Origin: Vitrella brassicaformis CCMP3155
Taxonomy: Eukaryota > Protista > Chromerida
Reading direction: 5' to 3'
DNA: 42,600 nucleotides
Assembly (NCBI GenBank): GCA_001179505.1
Contig: CDMY01000614.1
Coordinates: 1 to 42,600 of the forward strand
In this document: positions 3,097 through 39,009 of the stretch, one piece after another
Layout of the letters: every line of letters starts with the position of its first letter
How positions within the stretch are numbered: the first letter of the stretch is position 1
Made by a program: the position numbers and the translations under genes
The notes under the pieces: generated by a model
What the model saw: the letters and a program-made list of their open reading frames with translations, nothing else
What the model was told of the DNA's origin: nothing
The model's database searches: none

Positions 3097-4176
3097 GCAC
3101 GTGCACACCGGCAAAGTCCATTGAGGTGTGTAAGTAGTGCCCAGAGATCTCGAGGCAGGTAGCCGAAAGAGATTCCTCGGCCTCTGTGCGCTAGCAGGAC
3201 GGCCGAACGGACCGTACGCGTTCAACGCAAAGATTTGTAGTCAATCGTCTCACAATGGCAGCCGCGCAGCACACTCAGTCACACAGCACAACCACGCCAC
3301 AGCCATGCGTCGCATCAACACAGCAAGAAGGCGAGTACACAAGCGCTAAAGCCACACAGACAGACAGACCGTGCTGGCCATACTTGCTGGTGGATCCCTC
3401 ACACACAGGCCCTCCTATCAACAGGGTGATAACCAGCAGGCAGAGACAGCGGGACGGGCAGGCAGGCAGACAGACGGAGAAGGAAGCGACAAAAAGGTCG
3501 CCCGAGAAGGAGGAGAGCGTTCACGCGTGCACATGTATCGTCTTGTTGGTTGCTGGGGTGTGAGTTGGGTGACGGAGTAGACAGTGCAGTAAGTCGTGCA
3601 GGCACTCGTTGGCCCAGTAGGGGTCTGTACTGGCCGCCTTATTGTGTGTGTGCTTTTGTGTTTTGTGTTTTGTGTTTGTGCTATCGACAAGGCAGAGCAG
3701 AAAGAAAGAAGAAACACAACTGCCAAACCCGCCAACCAGCCAATCAGCCGAGATCGATGCGATTCAAAACATGTCGTGTGTGTGTGTGTGTCTGGATGTG
3801 CGTGTGAGCATTCACCGGGCCGGACAACCAGCAAGAAGGAAGCACAACGCCCAGAGAGACAGAGAGAGAGAGAGTCGGGCGTCGGGGGAAGGTCTGAGTG
3901 TGTGTGTGTGTGTGTAGATAAATTGGCTCGTCTCTGGTTGCCACTTGCCTTTGCTTGCGGCCAGCAGACAGACAAGGCGGCGACATAAACCAGTGTTCAG
4001 GCAGGCAGGCAGGCAACACCGGATCCATCCCTTCTCTCTCCTGCGTCGCGAGTCAGAACTGGGTGGTGCGAGTGAATGCCAGTGGTACACAAACGCACAC
4101 ACAACCAGGAGCAGCAGCAGCAGAAGGTACGCACACACACATATAAGTGAGTGGATCGACACATGAGTCCCCTGGT

Positions 4177-4476
4177 NNNNNNNNNNNNNNNNNNNNNNNN
4201 NNNNNNNNNNNNNNNNNNNNNNNNNNNNNNNNNNNNNNNNNNNNNNNNNNNNNNNNNNNNNNNNNNNNNNNNNNNNNNNNNNNNNNNNNNNNNNNNNNNN
4301 NNNNNNNNNNNNNNNNNNNNNNNNNNNNNNNNNNNNNNNNNNNNNNNNNNNNNNNNNNNNNNNNNNNNNNNNNNNNNNNNNNNNNNNNNNNNNNNNNNNN
4401 NNNNNNNNNNNNNNNNNNNNNNNNNNNNNNNNNNNNNNNNNNNNNNNNNNNNNNNNNNNNNNNNNNNNNNNNNNNN
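4177..4476. other. Assembly gap (300 N)
   Basis: Run of n from 4177 to 4476. The right flank starts in (GCCA)n/(GACA)n repeats. Confidence 0.99.
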
Positions 4477-5683
4477 GCCAGCCAGCCAGCCAGCCAGCCA
4501 GCGAGACAGACAGACAGACAGACGGACGGACGTTCGGTCACACCAGTGGCTGGCTATCAAGTTGCAACCTACTTATACCTACCAGCGCTCGTGAGATCTC
4601 GTCTTGGTCAAGAAGCGGGCAAGCAGGCGCGCGAGTCTAATCACACGGAGAAGATGAGATGAGGTTAGACGGGAATAGCCAAGAGGACAAGAGAGAGGAA
4701 AGACTAGGAGCGACTATGCCCTCCCCCTAGCTACCTATCCACACGCACACACACACACAGAGAGCATAGAGGCACGCAGCCAGGCAGACAGGCAGACAGG
4801 AACGCGACGCGACATCCATAAAGCGCAAAGCGTAAAGTCCTGCTGGAAATATAATGAGGCAAACAATACAAACAGGCAAACAATACAGCCATCCGGGGAC
4901 ACGGACACACCCCCGCAACGCATGGCTGACCAGCCGGCGACCAGCACACAGAGACACACATGAGCAGGAAGATGGGCAGACAGACAGACAGACAGACAGA
5001 CACGCCTCACTCACTGACTACACGCTTCCTACCGACGGACGGACGGCCGTGCGTATGCAGGCCGCCGCCGCATAGAAAGCGACAAAAAACTTCCCTTCAC
5101 CCCTCCCAAGGCGATGGCTGATGGAACGGCACGACAGACGAGACGAGACGAGACGAGATGAGATGAAATGGGATGGCATGATGGCCATGGTTATACGCTA
5201 GAGACTATGATCTAGGTCTATCAACACAAGGCAAAGGCACACTGAGAGCGAGGGAGGGAGGGAGGGAGGGAGGGACGAACGAGTGAGTGGCAACAGAAAC
5301 CGACAGAGAGATACAGAGCCAAAGGGATGGGACGCACCAGCCAGCCAGGCAGCCAGCCAGGCAGCCAGGCAGCTAATGCGCACCACAAGCACCGCACCCA
5401 TAGCTTAAACTCCGATCCATCCAGCCAGCCAGCCCTTTCCCGTTCGCCGTGCATCAACCAACCAATGATTGGTCCAGTACTGTAGGAGAATAATCCCTTC
5501 CTTCCTCTGTTTGGCTGGCCGGCCCTCCCACCCGCTCCCCTCTCTGAAGCTGACGGATGACCTAGCGCTATGCATCAAATCAACCACACACAGACACACG
5601 CTCATGCAGCAGCAGGTGGCAGACATCCACATATAGGTAGAGGAGTGCGGCACCTCCTCTCATGTCTCATGTCCCAACCAACA

Positions 5684-28235: not shown

Positions 28236-28491
28236 TGGGTGGCAACAGATCGATGGGATGGGTGGTGGACCAGGTGGAGCGGTGAATCGCTTTCTTGTGT
28301 GCTGTTTGTGGTGCATAGCTCTGCGGACCGTGCATGCACCTCTGCTGGCTTGACTTTCGATGTTCGGAAATCGACCAAAGCTCGCAGCTGCGATTGCGAA
28401 AAGAAACCATCGCGAGGCAGAACCGAAGCCTCCGGACAGATCAGCGGTGCAGCAACAAGCCCAAGGTCTGATCTCATCAACTCTCGCCATC

Positions 28492-30350
28492 ATGCTGTTG
28501 CTCCTGCTTTCCTGGCAGAGCCTGCTGTCCACTGGTGGAGCGCTCGTCAGACATGTCCAGAGTGGCTTCGTCCCCCTACAGCCGCCTCGGCGTCGTTTGC
28601 GTCCATCCCGACTCATCCCAGCTGCCGAGAAGGGACAGGGCGGTGCGTCTGTGTCGACGACAGTGAGCCGCGAGAGGGCCGCCAGAGTGGTCGACGCCGC
28701 CCTTTGCTACCTCAAGCTGCATGAAACACCCAAAAGCTTCGTTTCGGGGTTGAGCGACCTCGTTCCATCCCTCATTTCTCGCGGCAATACCACCACTCAA
28801 TGGTCTGTTCAGCCGGACTTTCAGCTGTCGGGAGCGCCATTCTCGCCACCCGACCTTCAAGCCGTCTATGAGATGCACGCCAGCCAGTCCCCCTTTGGCC
28901 TGAAAGACCAGACAATTGTCGATCCAGATGTGCGCAACAGCCGGGAATTGTCAGCCGACCAAGTGCGCCTGAGCAGTCGGGACGGCCGGTGGGAGAATGT
29001 GATTGAGGGAATCTGCCGTACGGTGGAGGAGGAGATGACGCCGGGCTATCGAGTGACAGCGGATTTCTACAAAACCCTTATCTATGCGGAGGGCGACCAC
29101 TTCCGCGTCCACAAGGACACGCAGCGCACCGCAGAGATGTTTGGCTCACTGTTGCTCTTCCTCCCATCTGACTACAAAGGCGGAGACTTCCTGCTCTACG
29201 ATGGGGACCAATTCCATGGCGAACGCTTCAACAACGAGACGCGAGCAGCTCTCGAGAGCGGGCAGTGTCGGTGGCTGGCCTTCTTGGCTGACATCCCTCA
29301 TCGCGTGATGCCCGTTGAGTCGGGCCATCGACTCGTGCTGGCTTACAACCTGCGGCGGGAGAAATTGGCAGAGCCCCAGAGAGGAAGGCCTGCCCCGCTG
29401 GCCGCACCGCTGCAAGATCTGGTCGATATGCTCACCGACTACTTCACGTCGACCGGCGAGGAGACACAAGGGGACAGAGAGGTAAGCGGCCATGCAGTGA
29501 GTGCACATGAGAAGAGCATGTGAGTGATGGCTGCTGTCCCTCTGTGCTTTGGGCCGTGTTGTGTTTGCAGAAGGAGAGTGCCAGGCGGTTCGTCTTTTTG
29601 CTCGATCACGACTACACGCCTTCGTCAATCGGGCCTGACTACCTCAAAGGTGCCGACAGCGCCTTGTATCAGGTGCTGGCACAGCACTTCAACGTCAGCT
29701 TTGAGATGCTCAATGAGTTCGTCTCATTCGACGACCCCGCTCAATACTCGCTGATCGACAATGAGACTGACGCGGCGGTTCTGCGGGCAGGCACGGCCAA
29801 CATCACAGACGAAGAGAAGGCCCAGGTATTTGGACCTTACTGGGAGACCGAGTTCTTCGATGAAAATGAGTTCTGCGAGTTCTTCGATCACTTGACATGG
29901 TACGAATACCGGGACAGTCCAGAGTCGAAGCACTGTGATTATGAATACTTGAAAGACGAGTATTTGAAAATGTCCGAAGAAGAGAAGCAAAAATGGAGAC
30001 AAAGGGCCATCGCCAGACGGAAGGAAAAGGCCATCGCCGATTGGCGTTCTTCTCTCGCTGACGGGCAAGCGTCTCGGGTAGGTGTGCTCACTCACGCACT
30101 CTCACGTCACTACAACCTGTTGTCTCTCTGTTGTGTGTGTCAGTGGGGCGACGATGATTGGGTCAACCTGATGGACCGCATTCGAGAGAAGGCATCGAGC
30201 AACGACGTCGACTTTGTCTTCCCGGTGCGGAAGCCCGGACAGTCCGCCTTCGCGAAGAAGCCACATGTCATGTGGGGAGGAAACCAGGAAGCCAACTGGG
30301 AGTATCAGTACATTTCCGTGTGTCTCCTTGTGAGCGGGCTGAGAGAGTGA
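28492..30350 (+). CDS. 2-oxoglutarate/Fe(II)-dependent dioxygenase (prolyl-4-hydroxylase-like fold) with signal peptide and transit-like leader; 3 exons
   Basis: SPFGLKDQTIVDPDVRNSREL; FYKTLIYAEGDHFRVHKDTQRTAEMFGSLLLFLPSDYKGGDF (HxD); WLAFLADIPHRVMPVESGHRLVLAYNL (distal H and R); C-terminal FLLDHDYT...LKGAD. Introns are ~29481-29570 and ~30079-30143. An alternative upstream ATG lies at 28360. Confidence 0.87.
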
Positions 30351-31465: not shown

Positions 31466-31991
31466 CGTGCCGACGTCGATAGCTATCTATCTGTCTTATC
31501 TTCCGACCGGCAGCGCAGCCAAATACAAAGGGCTCTTGTACCTTGTCTTGTACTAACACTCGACGAACGCCAAAGCAGTACTGCTTTCCCGAAGATGGAT
31601 GTTGTGGTGGAAGCTCGTCAGAGGAGTAGAAGCATCAACTTCCACATCCACTTCTCACTCCAGCCCGCGGCCCATCTACCTGTAGCTCGCACTTGATGGA
31701 GAGTATTGGAGTGTTGTATTGAGGGGTACTGATGGCGTGTGGCCATCCCCCTGTTACCGTTGTTCCTCATTTGAGCCTCGGCTGACTTCGGACGAGCGTC
31801 TCTGGGCCATCCAGCGCTGAGAGAGGGCCGGAGAACAGCTGAGAGGACACTCGTACCTGCTGGGGCATCTGGGCCTTCCTCTCTGCCACCCCTCTACGAT
31901 TGCTTTGGTCTGCCTGAGTGAGGCTGGTTGCCGTTCTGCACCATCCATCCGCCATCCATTCCATCGACGACGGCGTGCACGCAGATGAGTC
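31466..31991. promoter_or_regulatory. Probable bidirectional promoter (I78 inhibitor / MATH-RING gene)
   Basis: Divergent ATGs about 525 bp apart. The inhibitor appears to have a 5' UTR intron (~31483-31541). Confidence 0.45.
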
Positions 31992-32632
31992 ATGAACTTC
32001 CTGAAGCCCATATTCCAGATCTTCCAAGAGTATGCGGAGCTGCCGCCCCTGCTCGACAATGAGATTCAGTTTGTGGTCAAGAAGTGGCGGGACACACGGC
32101 CGTGCCAGCCGCTGAGGGGCCCCTCCAAGCGGATCAAGTCCTTCTTTAACTGCAGGCTACTCGTCTTCCCGCAAGGTACGTAGATGAGAGAGAGAAGGAG
32201 GCAGGCCAGCCAGGCGCTGAACGGCTTTGGGATCATCTGCTGCCTTCGTGTGTTATATGTCATATGTGTGTGGATTGATGGTTTCGTTGGTTGCAGGGAG
32301 TCAGTCGTCGATTGACAACGTTGGTGTGTTCCTCGAGGTGGTGCCTGAGAACTATCCCCAGCACTGGTGCTTCCCATCCGTCAAATGCGAAATCACGGTC
32401 GGTCCCTCAGGCACAAACAGCAGCTGTCCGGCCTAGTGTCGCTCACTTTTCTGTCTTTGCTGTATTGTATGTTTGCCCTCTCTGCAGGTAGTGAACTTTC
32501 ACCAGTACGAGGAGTCCCTCCGCAAGTCTGCCACCCTGTCGTTCAGCTCCCAAGTCCTCACCGCCGGTATGCACACGCATACACGCCAACACACATACAT
32601 CTCCCCCCCCCGATGGAGGACCACCTCCCATC

Positions 32633-32664
<32 letters not shown>

Positions 32665-35600
32665 TCAGGCAGCAGCACGTTCATCCCGATATCGACCGTC
32701 AAGGACCCCGAGCGCGGCTTCCTCAGCCACGACGGTGCGCTGGTGGTGCGTGCGTCGGTGGAGCTGCCGGCGGTCGACCTGCACCTGGTGGACTTCGGCT
32801 CCCGGCAGGGGCAGGGCGCCAGCGCCCTCTACCATGAGCTGGGGCACGTCTGGGACAGCGAGATACGGATGGTCATCAAGAAGTGGCACTCACTCTCGCC
32901 GCAGGTACGTCAGACAGACAGAAAAGTCGTTTGCGTGTGCGCCTTCTGATCATCCATTCATTGTGTTGGGTGTGTGTGTCCAATCCACTGCATACAGGTT
33001 CCGCTGGCGACCCCCTGCAAGAAGATGCGTCAGTGCACGTTCCGACTGCTGGTGTACCCCAAGGGCACCGAGCGATTCCCATCGCACGTGGGGGCGTTCC
33101 TGGAGATCATCCCCACGTCGGACCTGCAGCCCTCCTGGTGCTTCAACCTCAAGTACGCCATCACCATCGAGAACTTCCTCCTCGGCCCCAATGGCAACCT
33201 CTCCAAGAACGACACGTACGCCTTCTGCGAGACGGCCACCGACAGGGGCTGGGCCGACCTCATCCACTTCGAGGTCCTCACCACCGAAACCGGATTCCTC
33301 TCGTCGGATGGGTCGCTCTCCGTCAAGCTGACCATCCTCGAGCAGCCCAAGATGTCCCGGCTGCGGGGGCCGCCGGGTGCCACTGCGCCAGGTGCGCCAT
33401 TGGCCCAGCAGCAGGCGGCGCAGGAAGCTTTGCGTCTCGAGGAGCAGCGGCAGCAGCAGGAGCAGAGGGAGAGGGAGCGGCAGATGGCGCTCGAGAATGC
33501 GGCCACGTCGGGCATGTCGACGGGCCGGTCGGCTGCCACGCCGCTGGGGCAGTGCCGGGCTGACGAGTGCCGTAACCTGCAGGGGCCGTCGGTGTGGCTG
33601 ACCGACGAGCGGGTCGTGTGCGAGTAAGCACACACACACTTACACACACACAGAGGAGGAAGGGGGCAACGGGGGGCTGTGGTCATTTATCCTCATTTAT
33701 CCGTGGGGTGCCATATGTATGTGTCTGTGCAGGTGCAGCGAGCACTGCAAGATCTACTACCACGCTTCCTGTTTCAAGAAGCTGGCCAAGGCCATCGCAT
33801 CCGACCTCGAGGACCACATTTGCCTCACCCCAGACTGCGACGGCACCCTCTTCCGCGTCAACCTCATCGACAGCGACGGCCGGCTCGTCCGCAAGTACAT
33901 CGACGACGAGGCCATCCTGCAGGAGATCAGGCGCAAGAAGCAGCAGCAGGCCGACCAGCGGTCGAACCCTGAGACCCCACCCGCCGTCGACATCCCCGAG
34001 CACTCCCGAGGCCGCAACACCCACGCCCACGCCCACGCCCACACGCGCAAGGGCAGGAACTCAGAACCAGAGAGGGGCGGAGACAAGGATGCCAACACCA
34101 AGGCCGACGAGCGAGCAAGACGCGCCAACAGCTCACAGTCGTCCCACCCTGCCCCTGCCCCTGCCCCAGCAGCGGCAGTAGCTGCAGCTGCAGCTGCAGC
34201 AGCCGACCCCTACCCCGCGCCCACCGAGCCCACCACAAGAGGTGCCCGAGCGCCCAGGCACTCTGACGAGCAGCCAGCCAGCTCGTCTGCTGCTGCGGCG
34301 GCGGCTGCCGGCCCATCGGTGGCGAGCAAGAGAAGTGACGATGCCGATGGACCGTCACGGCCGGCATGGCAGGGGCAGCGGCGAGGCATCCTGGACCTCT
34401 CGAGGAGCCGTGAGGGTCTGTCGATGATTGAGGCGCTGCAGCAGTCCTCATCGGGTCACACGAGCGGTGACGAGCGGGACAAGCGCGGGGAAGAGGGCGA
34501 GGAAGATGAGGATAATGACGGTGACGATGAGGAGGACAACGTGACGTCGGATCGATACCGGTCGAGAGGCAGCGACTCGCCCTCTGCGTCGGCACAGACG
34601 CCTCGGTCGACCTCTGTGGGGTCGGAGCAGATGTGGGGACTGATTGAGGGGGAGCATGGCGACAGGGATGGGGAGGCTATGTCATCGCTGGCTGGGGGCA
34701 TCTTCCTTCGCAAGTAAGTGGGAAGGTGCAGTCGAGATAAGCGACGGCAGACAAACGCACGGGTGCTTCCTTCCATGATGTGTGTGGATTTCAGGGACGC
34801 CGATCCTGACGGCATGCGCATTCGGGGTGAGCACGCCAACGCGTCAGCGGCCGAGCGACGGCGCAAGCCCCATGGCAAAGGCAAGCAGGGCAAGGTGACC
34901 CTCAGCCTCTCCGAGTTCCACCAGCAGGTGCAGAGCCACCCTGCGCCTCCGCCCCCACCGCCCCCGCCCCCAGACTACTCCAACATACTGCGGCAGACGT
35001 CCACCAACACCAGGAGAGGCCCGGGGCAGCTGACCGCACCGTCGGCTCTGCCGCCCCCACCCCCACCCGCCCCTCTGACCATTGCCAGGAGGCTGCCGGT
35101 GACGCCCACCGTCACAAGGGCTCCCATGAGAGGGCGGGGGATACACACGGGAGGGGGCCTGGTGCCTCTGGGAGGGCCGGCAGCTGCTGCAGCTGCTGCA
35201 GCTGCTGGTGTGCCCAATCCGGTCATCCCCCCGCAGCCCTTCTCGCACGAGTTCCCCAAGCTGGCTGGGCAGCCGGGCTCGCGTATTGGTAGTGGTCTTG
35301 GTCTCCCTCTCCCCTCGTCCATGTCAATGGCGGCATCGTCTGCTGCAGCCCCGCCACCCCCGGGCAGCTCCCCGTCGCTCGGGTTCATGGAGTGTCCCCC
35401 ACCGCCTCCTGGCCCGCCCCCACAGGAGGCCTTGTCATCCATGTCCTCAATGCCCTCTCCCCCATCAGCGCGCCCGAGGCATGAGTTCCGCATCTTGACC
35501 AACACGAACCGGCGCGCCAATGCCACTTCGTCACCCAGCGCATCGCCACCCAGCGGCCCTGCACCCCCACCGCCAGCGGCGGCAGTTGCAGCTGCAGCCG

Positions 35601-38600
35601 TTGCTGCCGCAGCAGAGAGCATCCCGAGCTCGCCTCCCCCGCCCCCATCATCCTCTCAGTCGCTGGGCGAGGCGAGCGACGGGCCGCAAACGTATGATGA
35701 GGCGCCATTGTGCCCCGCTCCTTGTTCTCCAGCTCCTGCTGCTGCAGCTGCCGCCGCTGCCGCCGCTGCTGAGGTGCCGTTGTCGGTCATCGAGGAGAGG
35801 GAGAGGGCAATATCTTCCCCGCTCCCTCCACCAAGTGGTCCATCGGCACCATTGTCGGGTGGTACGTCAGAGTCGCCCGGCCTGGCGCGCTCTCTGACGG
35901 AGGACGAACGGGACGACGGCAGAGGCGGCGAGGCGGAGGAGCAGGAATCGGAGGAAGAGCTGGATCTGAGGGTGACGGAGGACCAGCTGGTGGAGACGAA
36001 CGAGCTCTCCCTCGGTAGGGGGCCCACCCGCGGGCTGTCGGCGTTCGACCTCGTGTGCAGCATCTGTCAGTGCAATGTGGTCTACCGCCCTCGGGTGACC
36101 CGGTGCTACCATCTCTTCTGCGGCGAGTGCATCGCACAGTGGTTCGAGAAGCACAACCCCACGCAGTTCGAGGGTGGCGGGTTCAAGTCGTTCCTCCAGG
36201 CCGCCAAGAAGAGCACCCAGGACGCCTCGCTGCGGCGCACTGCCCCCTGCCCCATTTGCATGCGGCAGCTCGTCTACAACAAGGACCTTGTCTCCCTCTT
36301 TCCCACCAACAAGGCCGTCCTCCGGTCAGACAGCCAGCTGCGCCGCTTCGTGGAGCGCATCAACAACCTCCACATTCGGTGCAAGCACCACGAGCGAGGG
36401 TGCAGCTGGCAGGGGCGGCATGCCGACTACCCCGCCCATCTGGAGCAGTGCGTGACCAACCAGCGGGACATGAGGAGGCGCCGAGCCGGTGCTTCTCCCT
36501 CCCCTCCCCCACAACCACCCCGTGTGCCGTCTCCTGTCCCACCCCCCAGTTCCCCCGGCCCTCCAGAACCCCCCACGCCCCATGCTGCTGTCGCGGCTCC
36601 GTCGGCCACCGTGGCGGCCGGCAGGAGACGGAAGGACAAGCGGAAGGCCACAGAGGAGATCCGGATCGGCCCGTTGCCCCGCTGCCCAGCGCCCAGTCCA
36701 CAGCAGATTGCCGCTCTGTACGGGCTGCCGCTGGGAAGATCGACGAGGGACAGTGGGATGGAGGCCTCCTTCACGGGCGGGGGCAGCGAGCGGCTTGGCC
36801 CGACTCTGTCGTTGTCGCTCGCCCCGTCTGTGGGGTCCACCTCTGCGTCGCCGGCGTTGTTTCCTGGTGGCGGCAATCGCACCACGCTCTCAGCCAGCTC
36901 CAAGGCCTTCCAGCCGTCGGGCTTCCTCTCCATGGACAACACGGAGGTGTCTGCGAGTGGCTGCCCCTCACCGGCACCCACACCCGTCCCCACCGCCATC
37001 AATGCCAAGAAGCCGGGAGGGCTCGTGCACATCAACGCGCCACGCAGATCACGCAGACCGGAGCCACGACCCAGCACTGCCCACCAGGGGCTGTCGGCAG
37101 GGCCACCCCCTCCTCCCCCTCCCTCGATTGGCACCCCGGCACTCTCGTCTGTGGGCCCGCCTGAACGCGACGACTTGCCCCCCGACAGCCTGTTGTCCAA
37201 GATCATCTTCACTCGGTCGCCATCGCCGTCGGTCGTGTCGCCGGGAGCCACTTCTGCGGCCATCTCCGACTCGGCGGTCGTGCCACCACCCCCTCCACCA
37301 TCTGAAGACGGCTCTCGCGCGCACGGACCGCTGCTCATCTCTTCTCTGGTGCCTGCTCCTACATCGACGCCTGCACCAACGAGCTTCCCCGGCCAGCTCA
37401 ATCCCATGGCGCCTGAGTTCATCCCGATGGGATTCAAGCCATCTGGGCAGGGCTTCAGGCAGGAGGGGCCGTCTGGTGGTGGGCGGGGCAAGGGGCACGA
37501 TCCGGCCGATGGGGAGAGGGCGAAGAGCTCGGGTGACCTGAGGTCGACCCTTGACTGCGGCAGAGTCCGCAGCCCCTCACCACCCGCATCGCAGCCTGGC
37601 AGAACCCTGCGGCCATCGTCGCTCTCCCTGGCGGTGCATGACCCCCTTGACGACCCGCCGTCACATCGCGGGGCTGAGGGCGCCTCTGATGTCGGCTCGG
37701 CATCGGACGACGTGGGGGCGAAAGACCACCTCGTCCCTCGCGAGCTCATGAAGATGCTGGATGGGGAGCAGCCCTCGGGCTCCGCCACCTTCCCGTCCTC
37801 TTCGTCGGCCGCCCCTGACGTCCCATCGCAGGCTGCTGACCACCTGGCGTCTCTCCCCTTCCTCCCCGTCACACCCGACCGCACCCACAGCCGCTCAAGC
37901 AGCCCACAGGGCGGCACAGGCGACCTCTTCTCCACCAGCAGCCCGGCGGCTCCCCTCACTACTCCGGGGTTCTCGCAAGGCGGCGGTGCAGACGAGGCGG
38001 CCGGCTCTGCAGCGATGAAGGGGCCTGTGCCTTTTGCTGGCCTGACGGGCCTCTGTGTGGCGGCTGCAGCAGCGGCAGGGCAGAGCAGCATTCCGTCTGA
38101 TGACGTCGAGTCGAATATGGATGCCCCCAGCGACCCGCAGATTGCCACGGACGAGGCGAGATCAGCGTCGCCCGAACCGGCTCCTGCGTCGCCGCCAGGG
38201 CCACCGCCGTTCGGGGAGGGAAGGGGTGACCATGAGTCGACCCCGCAGACGCCTGCAGTGGCGTCTGACAAGCCTCGTGGTCTGACTGCGGCAGAGATGG
38301 CGACAGTGCGGCGTCTGATTGATTTGATGGCGAGGAGCGAGGAGGACTGTGAAGGGCTGGAGGAGTCGATTCGGGCACTGGTGGACCAGCTGGGTGAGCA
38401 AGACGCGACACGCAAGACACGAATGCCGTTGTTTCCATTCACTGTGATCTGTCTGGCCATCCATCCCTTCATCCATCAGGTGAGGGCCGGCAGGAGCTGC
38501 GTCAGCACCGCCAGCGGCTCTGCCGCATCCGGGACGGCGAACAGCCCATGACGCAGGACAATCTCCCCTCGAACACGTCGGGCTCACTCTCATCGGCATC

Positions 38601-39009
38601 GCAGCCAAACCAGGCCGACATCCACGCGATCCCCTTCCCCTCACTCACCGCCCCCACACTCGCCAGTGCCCCGGCGCCATTATCGGGCGGTGAAGACGAC
38701 CCCTCACGCCCACCTGAATGCACCGCTGCCCCTCTCCAGCAGCAGCAGGAAGGGCAGGAACTCGACAGAGGGGACAACGGCGACACTAATGACGGGAGGG
38801 AGAGGGACGCTAGTGGTGGGTCGGTGATGCCTGCCGTTGGGACCGTGCAGCGGCTTGAGTCGAACGCCTTGCAGCTGTCGGAGACACTGACGAGGCTTCG
38901 AGTGCTGCTGGATGGGCTGCCCAACAGCAGCGACGTTCTCAGTGGGTGCTTGGGAGGCGATGGCGATGGCGAGCAGAAGGCCGGGGACGATACGAAGGAC
39001 CGGGACTGA
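31992..39009 (+). CDS. Large putative E3 ubiquitin ligase: MATH + MATH + TTC3/DZIP3-like Cys/His domain + disordered region + RING-HC + TRAF/SIAH-type Zn finger + PAM2-like motifs + C-terminal coiled coil
   Basis: MATH1 (CRLLVFPQG...VGVFLEV...FIPISTVKDPERGFLSHDGALVVRASV) and MATH2 (FRLLVYPKG...VGAFLEI...DRGWADLI...GFLSSDGSLSVKLTI). Cys domain CRADEC...CECSEHCKIYYHASCFKKL...CLTPDCDG. RING CSIC...CYHLFCGEC...CPIC. Zn finger IRCKHHERGCSWQG...HLEQC. Phase-compatible introns lead to the stop at 39009. The start codon is less certain. Confidence 0.88.

Follow-up and report, generated by a model that had tools for sequence, protein, structure and literature searches.

A predicted single-chain RING ubiquitin ligase with tandem N-terminal MATH domains and a PAM2 motif in Vitrella brassicaformis

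The first 42,600 nucleotides (nt) of contig CDMY01000614.1 of the chromerid Vitrella brassicaformis CCMP3155, an alga akin to the malaria parasites (assembly GCA_001179505.1; positions 1-42,600, forward strand), here called the window, contain an expressed gene of eight exons which, as far as short-read contigs show, constitutes one transcription unit. Its protein would carry, from the N-terminus to the C-terminus, two MATH domains (MATH1 and MATH2), a TTC3/DZIP3-type Cys/His module, a disordered stretch, a RING, a CCHC finger, a PAM2-like and a PAM2 motif and a helical tail (Table 1). An earlier reading of the same DNA, referred to below as the original prediction, had claimed this order of domains, and the eight-exon model gives the same order. 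The interpretation that we favour, to which we would give about even chances, is that one expressed gene, put together by the shuffling of domains, encodes a putative RING ubiquitin ligase in a single chain.

Gene model and transcript evidence

Joined at their GT..AG sites, the eight exons make up 6,336 nt, which can be read without interruption as 2,111 codons. The seven introns all have GT..AG ends and are 81-121 nt in size, and an in-frame TGA is located 6 nt 5' of the ATG at 31992. The original prediction spoke of a single spliced protein of roughly 2000 amino acids (aa); the single protein stands, and its exact length is 2,111 aa. The GC content of the gene region is 0.57-0.69, and the reading frames are broken up as in spliced eukaryotic genes. 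The in-frame GC content at third codon positions (GC3) is 0.73-0.92 across all eight exons, whereas the overall GC content of the introns is 0.48-0.55. The exon 7 frame of 1,199 codons joins exon 6 in frame, and exon 8 displays the coding pattern over the three codon positions (GC1/2/3) only in the frame made by splicing out intron 7. This intron (38394-38479) is predicted and lies outside the stretch mapped with RNA; it has canonical ends, a length of 86 nt and a GC content of 0.52 similar to that of the other introns. Pro, Ser, Ala and Gly together account for 43% of the protein by composition count.

Logan contigs from four public runs were placed on positions 31900-37899. Three of the runs have to be told apart: X5 and X6 are different samples from different studies, and X4 is unspliced and DNA-like. 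A 1,760-nt contig of X5 links exons 1 to 6 (31920-32173, 32295-32396, 32674-32901, 32995-33623 and 33733-34194), with introns 1, 2, 4 and 5 spliced out as modelled. That intron 3 is removed follows only from the length of the contig, in which 85 letters between the second and third of these pieces fit exon 3, a stretch that was skipped as a repeat. Another X5 contig of 3,484 nt extends from 35402 to beyond the mapped stretch and takes in the RING and the finger together with the two PAM2 sites. The depth of the main X5 contigs of the gene is about 73-103, except for a 373-nt contig at 19.5. Since spliced short-read contigs tile exons 1-7 and the intron 6 joint (34713>34795, GT..AG) occurs in both studies (depth 73 in X5 and 6.5 in X6), the earlier claim of one transcript is borne out at the level of such contigs.

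Both the spliced runs and the unspliced X4 have contig breaks at 34194-34416 and 35362-35402. As the unspliced contigs are broken too, the breaks are caused by Ala/Pro-codon repeats and not by transcript ends. One low-depth contig of X6 departs from the window where exon 6 is rich in Ala/GCN codons (34212-34401): it has three substitutions and a 20-nt deletion, with 24 gap letters in total, and it skips 121 nt (34281-34401, with non-canonical GC..TC ends). The shifted frame would meet a stop at 34425, short of the RING. This form may be allelic, a rare isoform or a fault of the assembly. The gaps, the skip and the stop of this contig, together with the interruption of all contigs at 34194-34416, would suit a locus with two products, namely a short MATH-MATH-Zn protein that an isoform or allele with a shifted frame cuts off in the Ala-rich part of exon 6, and a RING product of its own that starts downstream, with the fusion of the two rare or absent. 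We consider such a locus very unlikely. The same X6 contig continues to the end of exon 6 and is joined to exon 7 with intron 6 correctly spliced out, the X5 depth is even over both halves of the gene, and an X4 contig at 34165-34444 is identical to the window. The breaks, being present also in unspliced contigs, reflect repeats. Moreover, upstream of the exon 7 frame there is no in-frame ATG context belonging to it, and the frame connects with that of exon 6.

At the 5' end of the gene, contigs of X4, X5 and X6 join 31955 to 32038 with non-canonical CC..GG ends, dropping 82 nt, the ATG among them. The depth in the bin 31900-32101 is 2-6 times that of the next bin, and loose ends at 31907 and 32101 enter unrelated sequence. 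A second locus or allele that shares parts of the 5' untranslated region and of exon 1 may be behind the 31955/32038 joint; a repeat search within the window found no second copy of exon 1. A 681-aa open reading frame on the minus strand opposite exon 7 (36427-38472) was rejected as a gene, since the GC-rich, low-complexity sequence of the sense exon most likely gives rise to it as a by-product.

Domains of the predicted protein

The two N-terminal MATH domains of the original prediction were recovered. MATH2 scores above the Pfam cut-off for PF00917 (23.5 bits against 21.2, with the exon 5 translation). With 80 aligned MATH segments as input, AlphaFold2 (AF2) gave a model of MATH2 with a predicted local distance difference test (pLDDT) score of 96, and the best PDB matches of the model in Foldseek are the TRAF-like domain of USP7 and the MATH domain of SPOP, with template modelling (TM) scores of 0.70-0.78. 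The alignment behind the model consisted of MATH relatives and the model thus leans to the MATH fold, so that the fold is confirmed and not discovered. In Pfam, MATH1 matches just MATH_2 at E 0.018 with the exon 4 piece. It is, however, 37% identical to MATH2 (E 6e-24), and its phmmer matches to USP7-type MATH domains are many and stronger than those of MATH2. The two domains can therefore be placed in the MATH/TRAF superfamily, the fold of which is an eight-stranded antiparallel beta-sandwich, MATH2 by Pfam, AF2 and Foldseek and MATH1 by its identity to MATH2. The D-R-G-W loop kept in MATH2 (DRGWH in the consensus of the relatives) corresponds to the DWGF peptide-binding loop in USP7 and SPOP. 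By sequence and modelled fold, both predicted MATH domains are nearest to the peptide-binding USP7/UBP12/SPOP type and not to TRAF-C, and the label of a 'reverse TRAF' given to the protein earlier fits its layout only.

The next module is rich in Cys and His, and the TTC3-like zinc domain proposed for it earlier is supported by the Pfam profile TTC3_DZIP3_dom (PF19179), which matches at E 2e-8 with the whole exon 6 and at E 5e-10 with a trimmed piece (39.5 bits, gathering cut-off 26.9). The match covers profile positions 58-113 of 116 only, that is, the C-terminal half, and lies entirely inside exon 6. The part of the module encoded by the tail of exon 5 has no Pfam match, though it contributes three Cys residues (C386, C391 and C408) to the candidate ligands; those in exon 6 are C410, C414, H419, C422, C439 and C444. 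The look-alikes of the module are weak and of PHD/RING kind, with Atlas scores of 0.79 or lower for the half-domain, and a search of the TTC3-type half-domain against PDB sequences gave nothing meaningful.

The C3HC4 RING, also predicted earlier, passes the Pfam cut-off (zf-C3HC4, 22.0 bits against 21) and has all eight canonical zinc ligands in the spacing C-x2-C-x12-C-x-H-x2-C-x2-C-x39-C-x2-C. In addition, exon 7 matches zf-RING_2 at E 1.7e-5, and RINGs are matched among PDB sequences at E 7e-4. We take I1159, W1186 and P1222 to be the usual positions of contact with the ubiquitin-conjugating enzyme (E2). The CCHC finger begins 40 aa past the RING and has a GC-x-W-x-G core. The original prediction considered it a TRAF/SIAH-type zinc finger directly after the RING; the CCHC pattern agrees with this, and the profile scores are too weak for a statistical assignment. 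The zf-TRAF profile of Pfam gave no match at E<=1, and the finger together with the tail of the RING matched TRAF5 at E 0.018 in the PDB sequence search. In the Atlas, the look-alikes of the RING-finger region are clusters with a RING only, joined at rank 10 by one that is TRAF-like (0.92); NRDP1, RNF151 and TRAF are structural neighbours of the top Atlas match and not of the Vitrella protein itself. For TRAF RING dimers, ZnF1 is reported to influence their activity (PMC5702613).

Two PAM2-like motifs were originally predicted, and one of them holds. LNPMAPEFIP at aa 1604-1613 is an exact LNxxAxEFxP with a chance expectation of 7.5e-5 from the protein composition; it sits within a Pro/Ser/Ala-rich region and satisfies the consensus xxLNxxAxEFxP. 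The other, LSASSKAFQP at aa 1434, fits a loose pattern only and would be expected 0.058 times in a protein of such composition. The binding of PAM2 to poly(A)-binding protein (PABP), via the latter's MLLE domain, is established (PMC6805484 and references therein).

It is possible, though somewhat unlikely, that we are dealing with a real MATH-RING ligase in a single chain in which PAM2 is incidental or secondary, and that its targets are nuclear, chromatin or signalling proteins with degrons of the USP7/SPOP type and without any tie to messenger ribonucleoproteins (mRNPs). The nearest relatives of the MATH domains are of the USP7/UBP12 and SPOP types, the known clients of which are mostly nuclear regulators. 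The Cys/His module is weakly PHD-like, and a basic stretch, RRRKDKRK at aa 1346-1353, resembles by eye a nuclear localization signal. An incidental motif is, however, at odds with the exact agreement at all six specified positions of PAM2, given the low chance expectation, and with its location in a disordered region, as in functional PAM2 motifs.

Table 1. Positions of the gene and of the predicted features of its product in the window.
Feature	Positions	Strand	Residues (aa)	Remarks
Whole coding region	31992..39009	+	1-2111	8 exons, 2,111 aa; TGA stop 39007-39009
Exons	31992-32175, 32297-32397, 32488-32566, 32669-32904, 32998-33623, 33733-34713, 34795-38393, 38480-39009	+		Frames joined at GT..AG sites
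MATH1	32025..32799	+	12-165	Exons 1-4; split by introns 32176-32296, 32398-32487, 32567-32668
MATH2	32848..33351	+	182-318	Split by intron 32905-32997; Pfam MATH; D-R-G-W loop kept
Charged Q/E/R-rich helix	33400..33495	+	335-366	By-eye reading; probably coiled coil or single helix
Cys/His module with TTC3/DZIP3-type domain	33553..33886	+	386-460	PF19179; split by intron 33624-33732
Disordered linker 1	33887..36037	+	461-1150	About 690 aa; Pro/Ala/Ser-rich; no Pfam match; holds intron 6 (34714-34794)
C3HC4 RING	36056..36259	+	1157-1224	39-aa insert between ligands 6 and 7; Pfam and pattern
CCHC finger, CKHHERGCSWQGRHADYPAHLEQC	36380..36451	+	1265-1288	C-x6-C-x11-H-x3-C; TRAF/SIAH-like by pattern
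Weak PAM2-like motif	36881..36925	+	1432-1446	LSASSKAFQP at aa 1434; loose pattern
Canonical PAM2, QLNPMAPEFIPMGF	37391..37435	+	1602-1616	Exact LNxxAxEFxP
C-terminal helical segments	38285..38919	+	1900-1955, 2053-2082	Heptad-like, by eye; cross predicted intron 7

Relatives and interpretation

A HMMER search with exon 5 over 1.84 billion cluster representatives yielded 89 MATH proteins, with a best E of 1e-12 and identity never above 42%. A canonical RING was absent from all 89 when looked for with a regular expression, and none of them matched the Vitrella model past aa 368. Pfam scans of 22 of the relatives revealed 14 in which MATH is combined with UCH and/or USP7-specific domains, as in the USP7/UBP12-type deubiquitinases, among them a Symbiodinium "ubiquitin carboxyl-terminal hydrolase 12". 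The others are a MATH-kinase, six plant or green-algal proteins with four MATH domains and a Cardiosporidium fragment with no Pfam match. The relative P0015 looks MATH-BTB-like, by eye only. A profile search with the MATH1 alignment among candidates of 97-308 aa returned only the Cardiosporidium fragment and USP7-like MATH pieces from Effrenium and from a metatranscriptome; the latter two lie directly 5' of UCH genes. Scans of metagenomes with the Cardiosporidium MATH1 and with the RING-finger region gave no match.

A protein with the same layout was thus not found among the 89 MATH relatives, in length-restricted word-index searches or in metagenomes, in searches for which the spliced N-terminus never served as one query. 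Such a layout is also undescribed in the literature searched on MATH with RING and PAM2, on apicomplexan ubiquitin ligase (E3) surveys and on Vitrella ubiquitin genes. The domain combination had been called unfamiliar from characterised proteins, with which the outcome of these searches agrees; their restriction and the want of a full spliced N-terminal query are the main weakness of the claim of novelty.

KAF8820089.1 (partial) of Cardiosporidium cionae is 46% identical to MATH1 over 140 aa, unbroken across three introns, and it pairs with Vitrella MATH1 with a Shimodaira-Hasegawa-like approximate likelihood ratio test (SH-aLRT) value of 97, away from a probable apicomplexan USP7 clade. A phase-1 intron within the Gly codon after FP(Q/K) is common to the Cardiosporidium gene and Vitrella MATH1. 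The partial gene, IE077_003588 (JADAQX010000484.1, 10367-11634), breaks off where its contig does, at a GT donor with a CT microsatellite after it, and the rest of the protein is therefore unassembled. Judged by its sequence, the fragment is probably an orthologue of the N-terminal MATH1. The 46% identity and the shared phase-1 intron in an apicomplexan argue for selection on the N-terminal module, which bears on another alternative, that of a lineage-specific chimeric gene that arose by domain shuffling and is transcribed without a selected function. The failure to find a relative of the same layout is in line with such a chimera. However, the frame of 2,111 codons is open over eight exons and has the coding GC3 pattern, all zinc ligands are intact and MATH1 has its apicomplexan counterpart with the same intron, and we would give the chimera a very small probability indeed.

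Among the more distant relatives, Protea KAJ4958148.1 (P0013) and Cymbomonas KAK3259951.1 (P0006) belong to an uncharacterised plant/green-algal type of 1,200-1,740 aa that has four MATH domains in its N-terminal part. A weak FancD2-like stretch is present in some of these proteins, and there is one weak match to the TTC3 helical domain (E 0.003). From their sequences, they could be a distant architectural cousin.

In the favoured interpretation of a single-chain ligase, the tandem N-terminal MATH domains of the USP7/SPOP type would bind short linear peptide motifs of substrates or partners and act as a duplicated degron-reading pair, and the PHD/RING-like TTC3/DZIP3 Cys/His module would add a second surface for interactions, one that is zinc-bound. 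E2~ubiquitin would be recruited by the C3HC4 RING with its adjoining CCHC finger, a TRAF/RNF41-like unit; the RING would probably be dimeric, aided by the C-terminal helices. The PAM2 motif within the long disordered linkers would be the docking motif. From the sequence we thus infer a putative ligase activity, substrate recruitment by MATH, docking on PABP and, possibly, translation-coupled ubiquitination. A more specific proposal is that of a myzozoan-specific ligase of chromerids and at least some apicomplexans, tethered on PABP by PAM2, in which MATH would select degron-bearing mRNP proteins or nascent chains and which would be, in function, an analogue of MKRN1-type poly(A)-linked quality control made from unrelated parts; this we hold to be quite unlikely.

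Several observations weigh against the favoured interpretation. No single contig spans the whole gene, the breaks being at two low-complexity stretches, and the low-depth X6 contig with the 121-nt skip encodes a frame that stops before the RING. MATH1 is without a D-x-G-aromatic loop and has T-A-G-S in its place, as does the Cardiosporidium protein. The CCHC finger reaches only E 0.049 with Sina_ZnF (14.5 bits, cut-off 32) and had no match when searched alone against PDB sequences. For the RING-finger region, AF2 on the single sequence gave a pLDDT of 43, unusable for a fold search. An orthologue covering the RING or PAM2 was not found in word-index searches with the RING-finger region (candidates of 660-2098 and 702-2235 aa) or in metagenomes. 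Finally, a lone short motif can be without function when it lies amid some 1,300 aa of disorder, and the docking on PABP would presume an MLLE domain in the PABP of Vitrella.

If the single-chain ligase is real, the same degron code would be legible both to the ligase and to the USP7-type deubiquitinases of the cell; to our knowledge, there is no earlier example of a USP7-type degron reader in cis with a RING. The probable orthologue fragment from an apicomplexan hints that the N-terminal module may be older than parasitism, and the family could then bear on post-transcriptional control in parasites.

Elsewhere in the window, two long adjoining open reading frames of 387 and 276 aa are located upstream of the gene (28360-30350, plus strand); they are coding-like and contain an H-x-D...H-like stretch. 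Around positions 4000-5000 the GC content falls to 0.39, and N letters near 4475, beside (CAGA)n and (CAGG)n microsatellites, are probably an assembly gap.

Comparison with known systems

The closest sequences to the MATH domains are those of USP7/HAUSP and of the plant and dinoflagellate UBP12/13, which have an N-terminal MATH of the same subtype (best matches E 1e-12 to 1e-8, 25-40% identity) and in which MATH is followed by UCH and USP7_ICP0_bdg; USP7 is also the top structural match, with a TM score of 0.78. The Vitrella protein differs from them in having a RING instead of the USP protease, two MATH domains and no ubiquitin-like (UBL) tail. No UCH/USP catalytic domain was matched by Pfam in any Vitrella exon, and the protein is thus not a member of the USP7/UBP12 group. 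SPOP and the BPM proteins, acting with CUL3, likewise use a USP7/SPOP-type MATH as the degron receptor of a RING-dependent ligase, and SPOP is among the top structural matches. SPOP, however, recruits CUL3-RBX1 in trans through its BTB, whereas the Vitrella protein would have its RING in cis and has no BTB.

TRAF proteins proper have an N-terminal RING, TRAF zinc fingers, a coiled coil (TRAF-N) and a C-terminal TRAF-C MATH. Members of the family such as TRAF6, TRAF2 and TRAF5 share with the Vitrella protein a RING-HC followed by a finger of CCHC pattern, helical segments and a MATH in cis. In the Vitrella protein, on the other hand, MATH is N-terminal and not of the TRAF-C type, there is one finger and not several, and about 690 aa of disorder separate the modules. 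Membership in the TRAF family was rejected, on the grounds of the inverted order, the USP7/UBP12-type MATH and the missing zf-TRAF match. NRDP1/RNF41 and RNF151 combine a RING with a TRAF-like finger and TRIM37 combines RING and MATH in one chain, but in all three the RING is N-terminal, and in TRIM37 the MATH is C-terminal, after a B-box and a coiled coil. RNF41, RNF151 and TRIM37 are, unlike the Vitrella protein, without PAM2 and without the TTC3/DZIP3 domain.

With TTC3 and DZIP3 (hRUL138) the Vitrella protein shares PF19179, by the C-terminal half of the profile only. TTC3 and DZIP3 are long proteins in which an N-terminal interaction module, the Cys/His domain and long linkers precede a RING further downstream; in animals, their N-termini are TPR or other domains and the RING is a C-terminal RING-H2. 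The plant and algal proteins with four MATH domains are long and have N-terminal MATH domains in tandem like those of Vitrella, but they have no RING, their MATH domains fall into a separate clade and there is no match beyond the MATH region.

Each pairing of domains in the Vitrella protein therefore has a precedent, MATH with a ligase in SPOP-CUL3, TRAF and TRIM37, PAM2 with RING in MKRN1, and PF19179 upstream of RING in TTC3 and DZIP3, which makes the protein less surprising than the original prediction held. What appears to be new, as judged from the restricted searches, in which it was not found elsewhere, is the whole combination and order of the domains. For the docking on PABP the nearest parallel is MKRN1, a RING E3 bearing a PAM2 that deviates from the consensus; through this motif it is brought to PABPC1 on polyadenylated mRNA, and its role is in ribosome quality control linked to poly(A) (PMC6805484). 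In the Vitrella protein, PAM2 follows the consensus exactly. MKRN1 lacks a MATH and has RNA-binding fingers of the CCCH type, and the two are unrelated in sequence outside the RING. If the Vitrella protein works in the way that its modules suggest, it would join MKRN1 as a second example, of independent assembly, of a RING ligase with a tether to poly(A)-binding protein.

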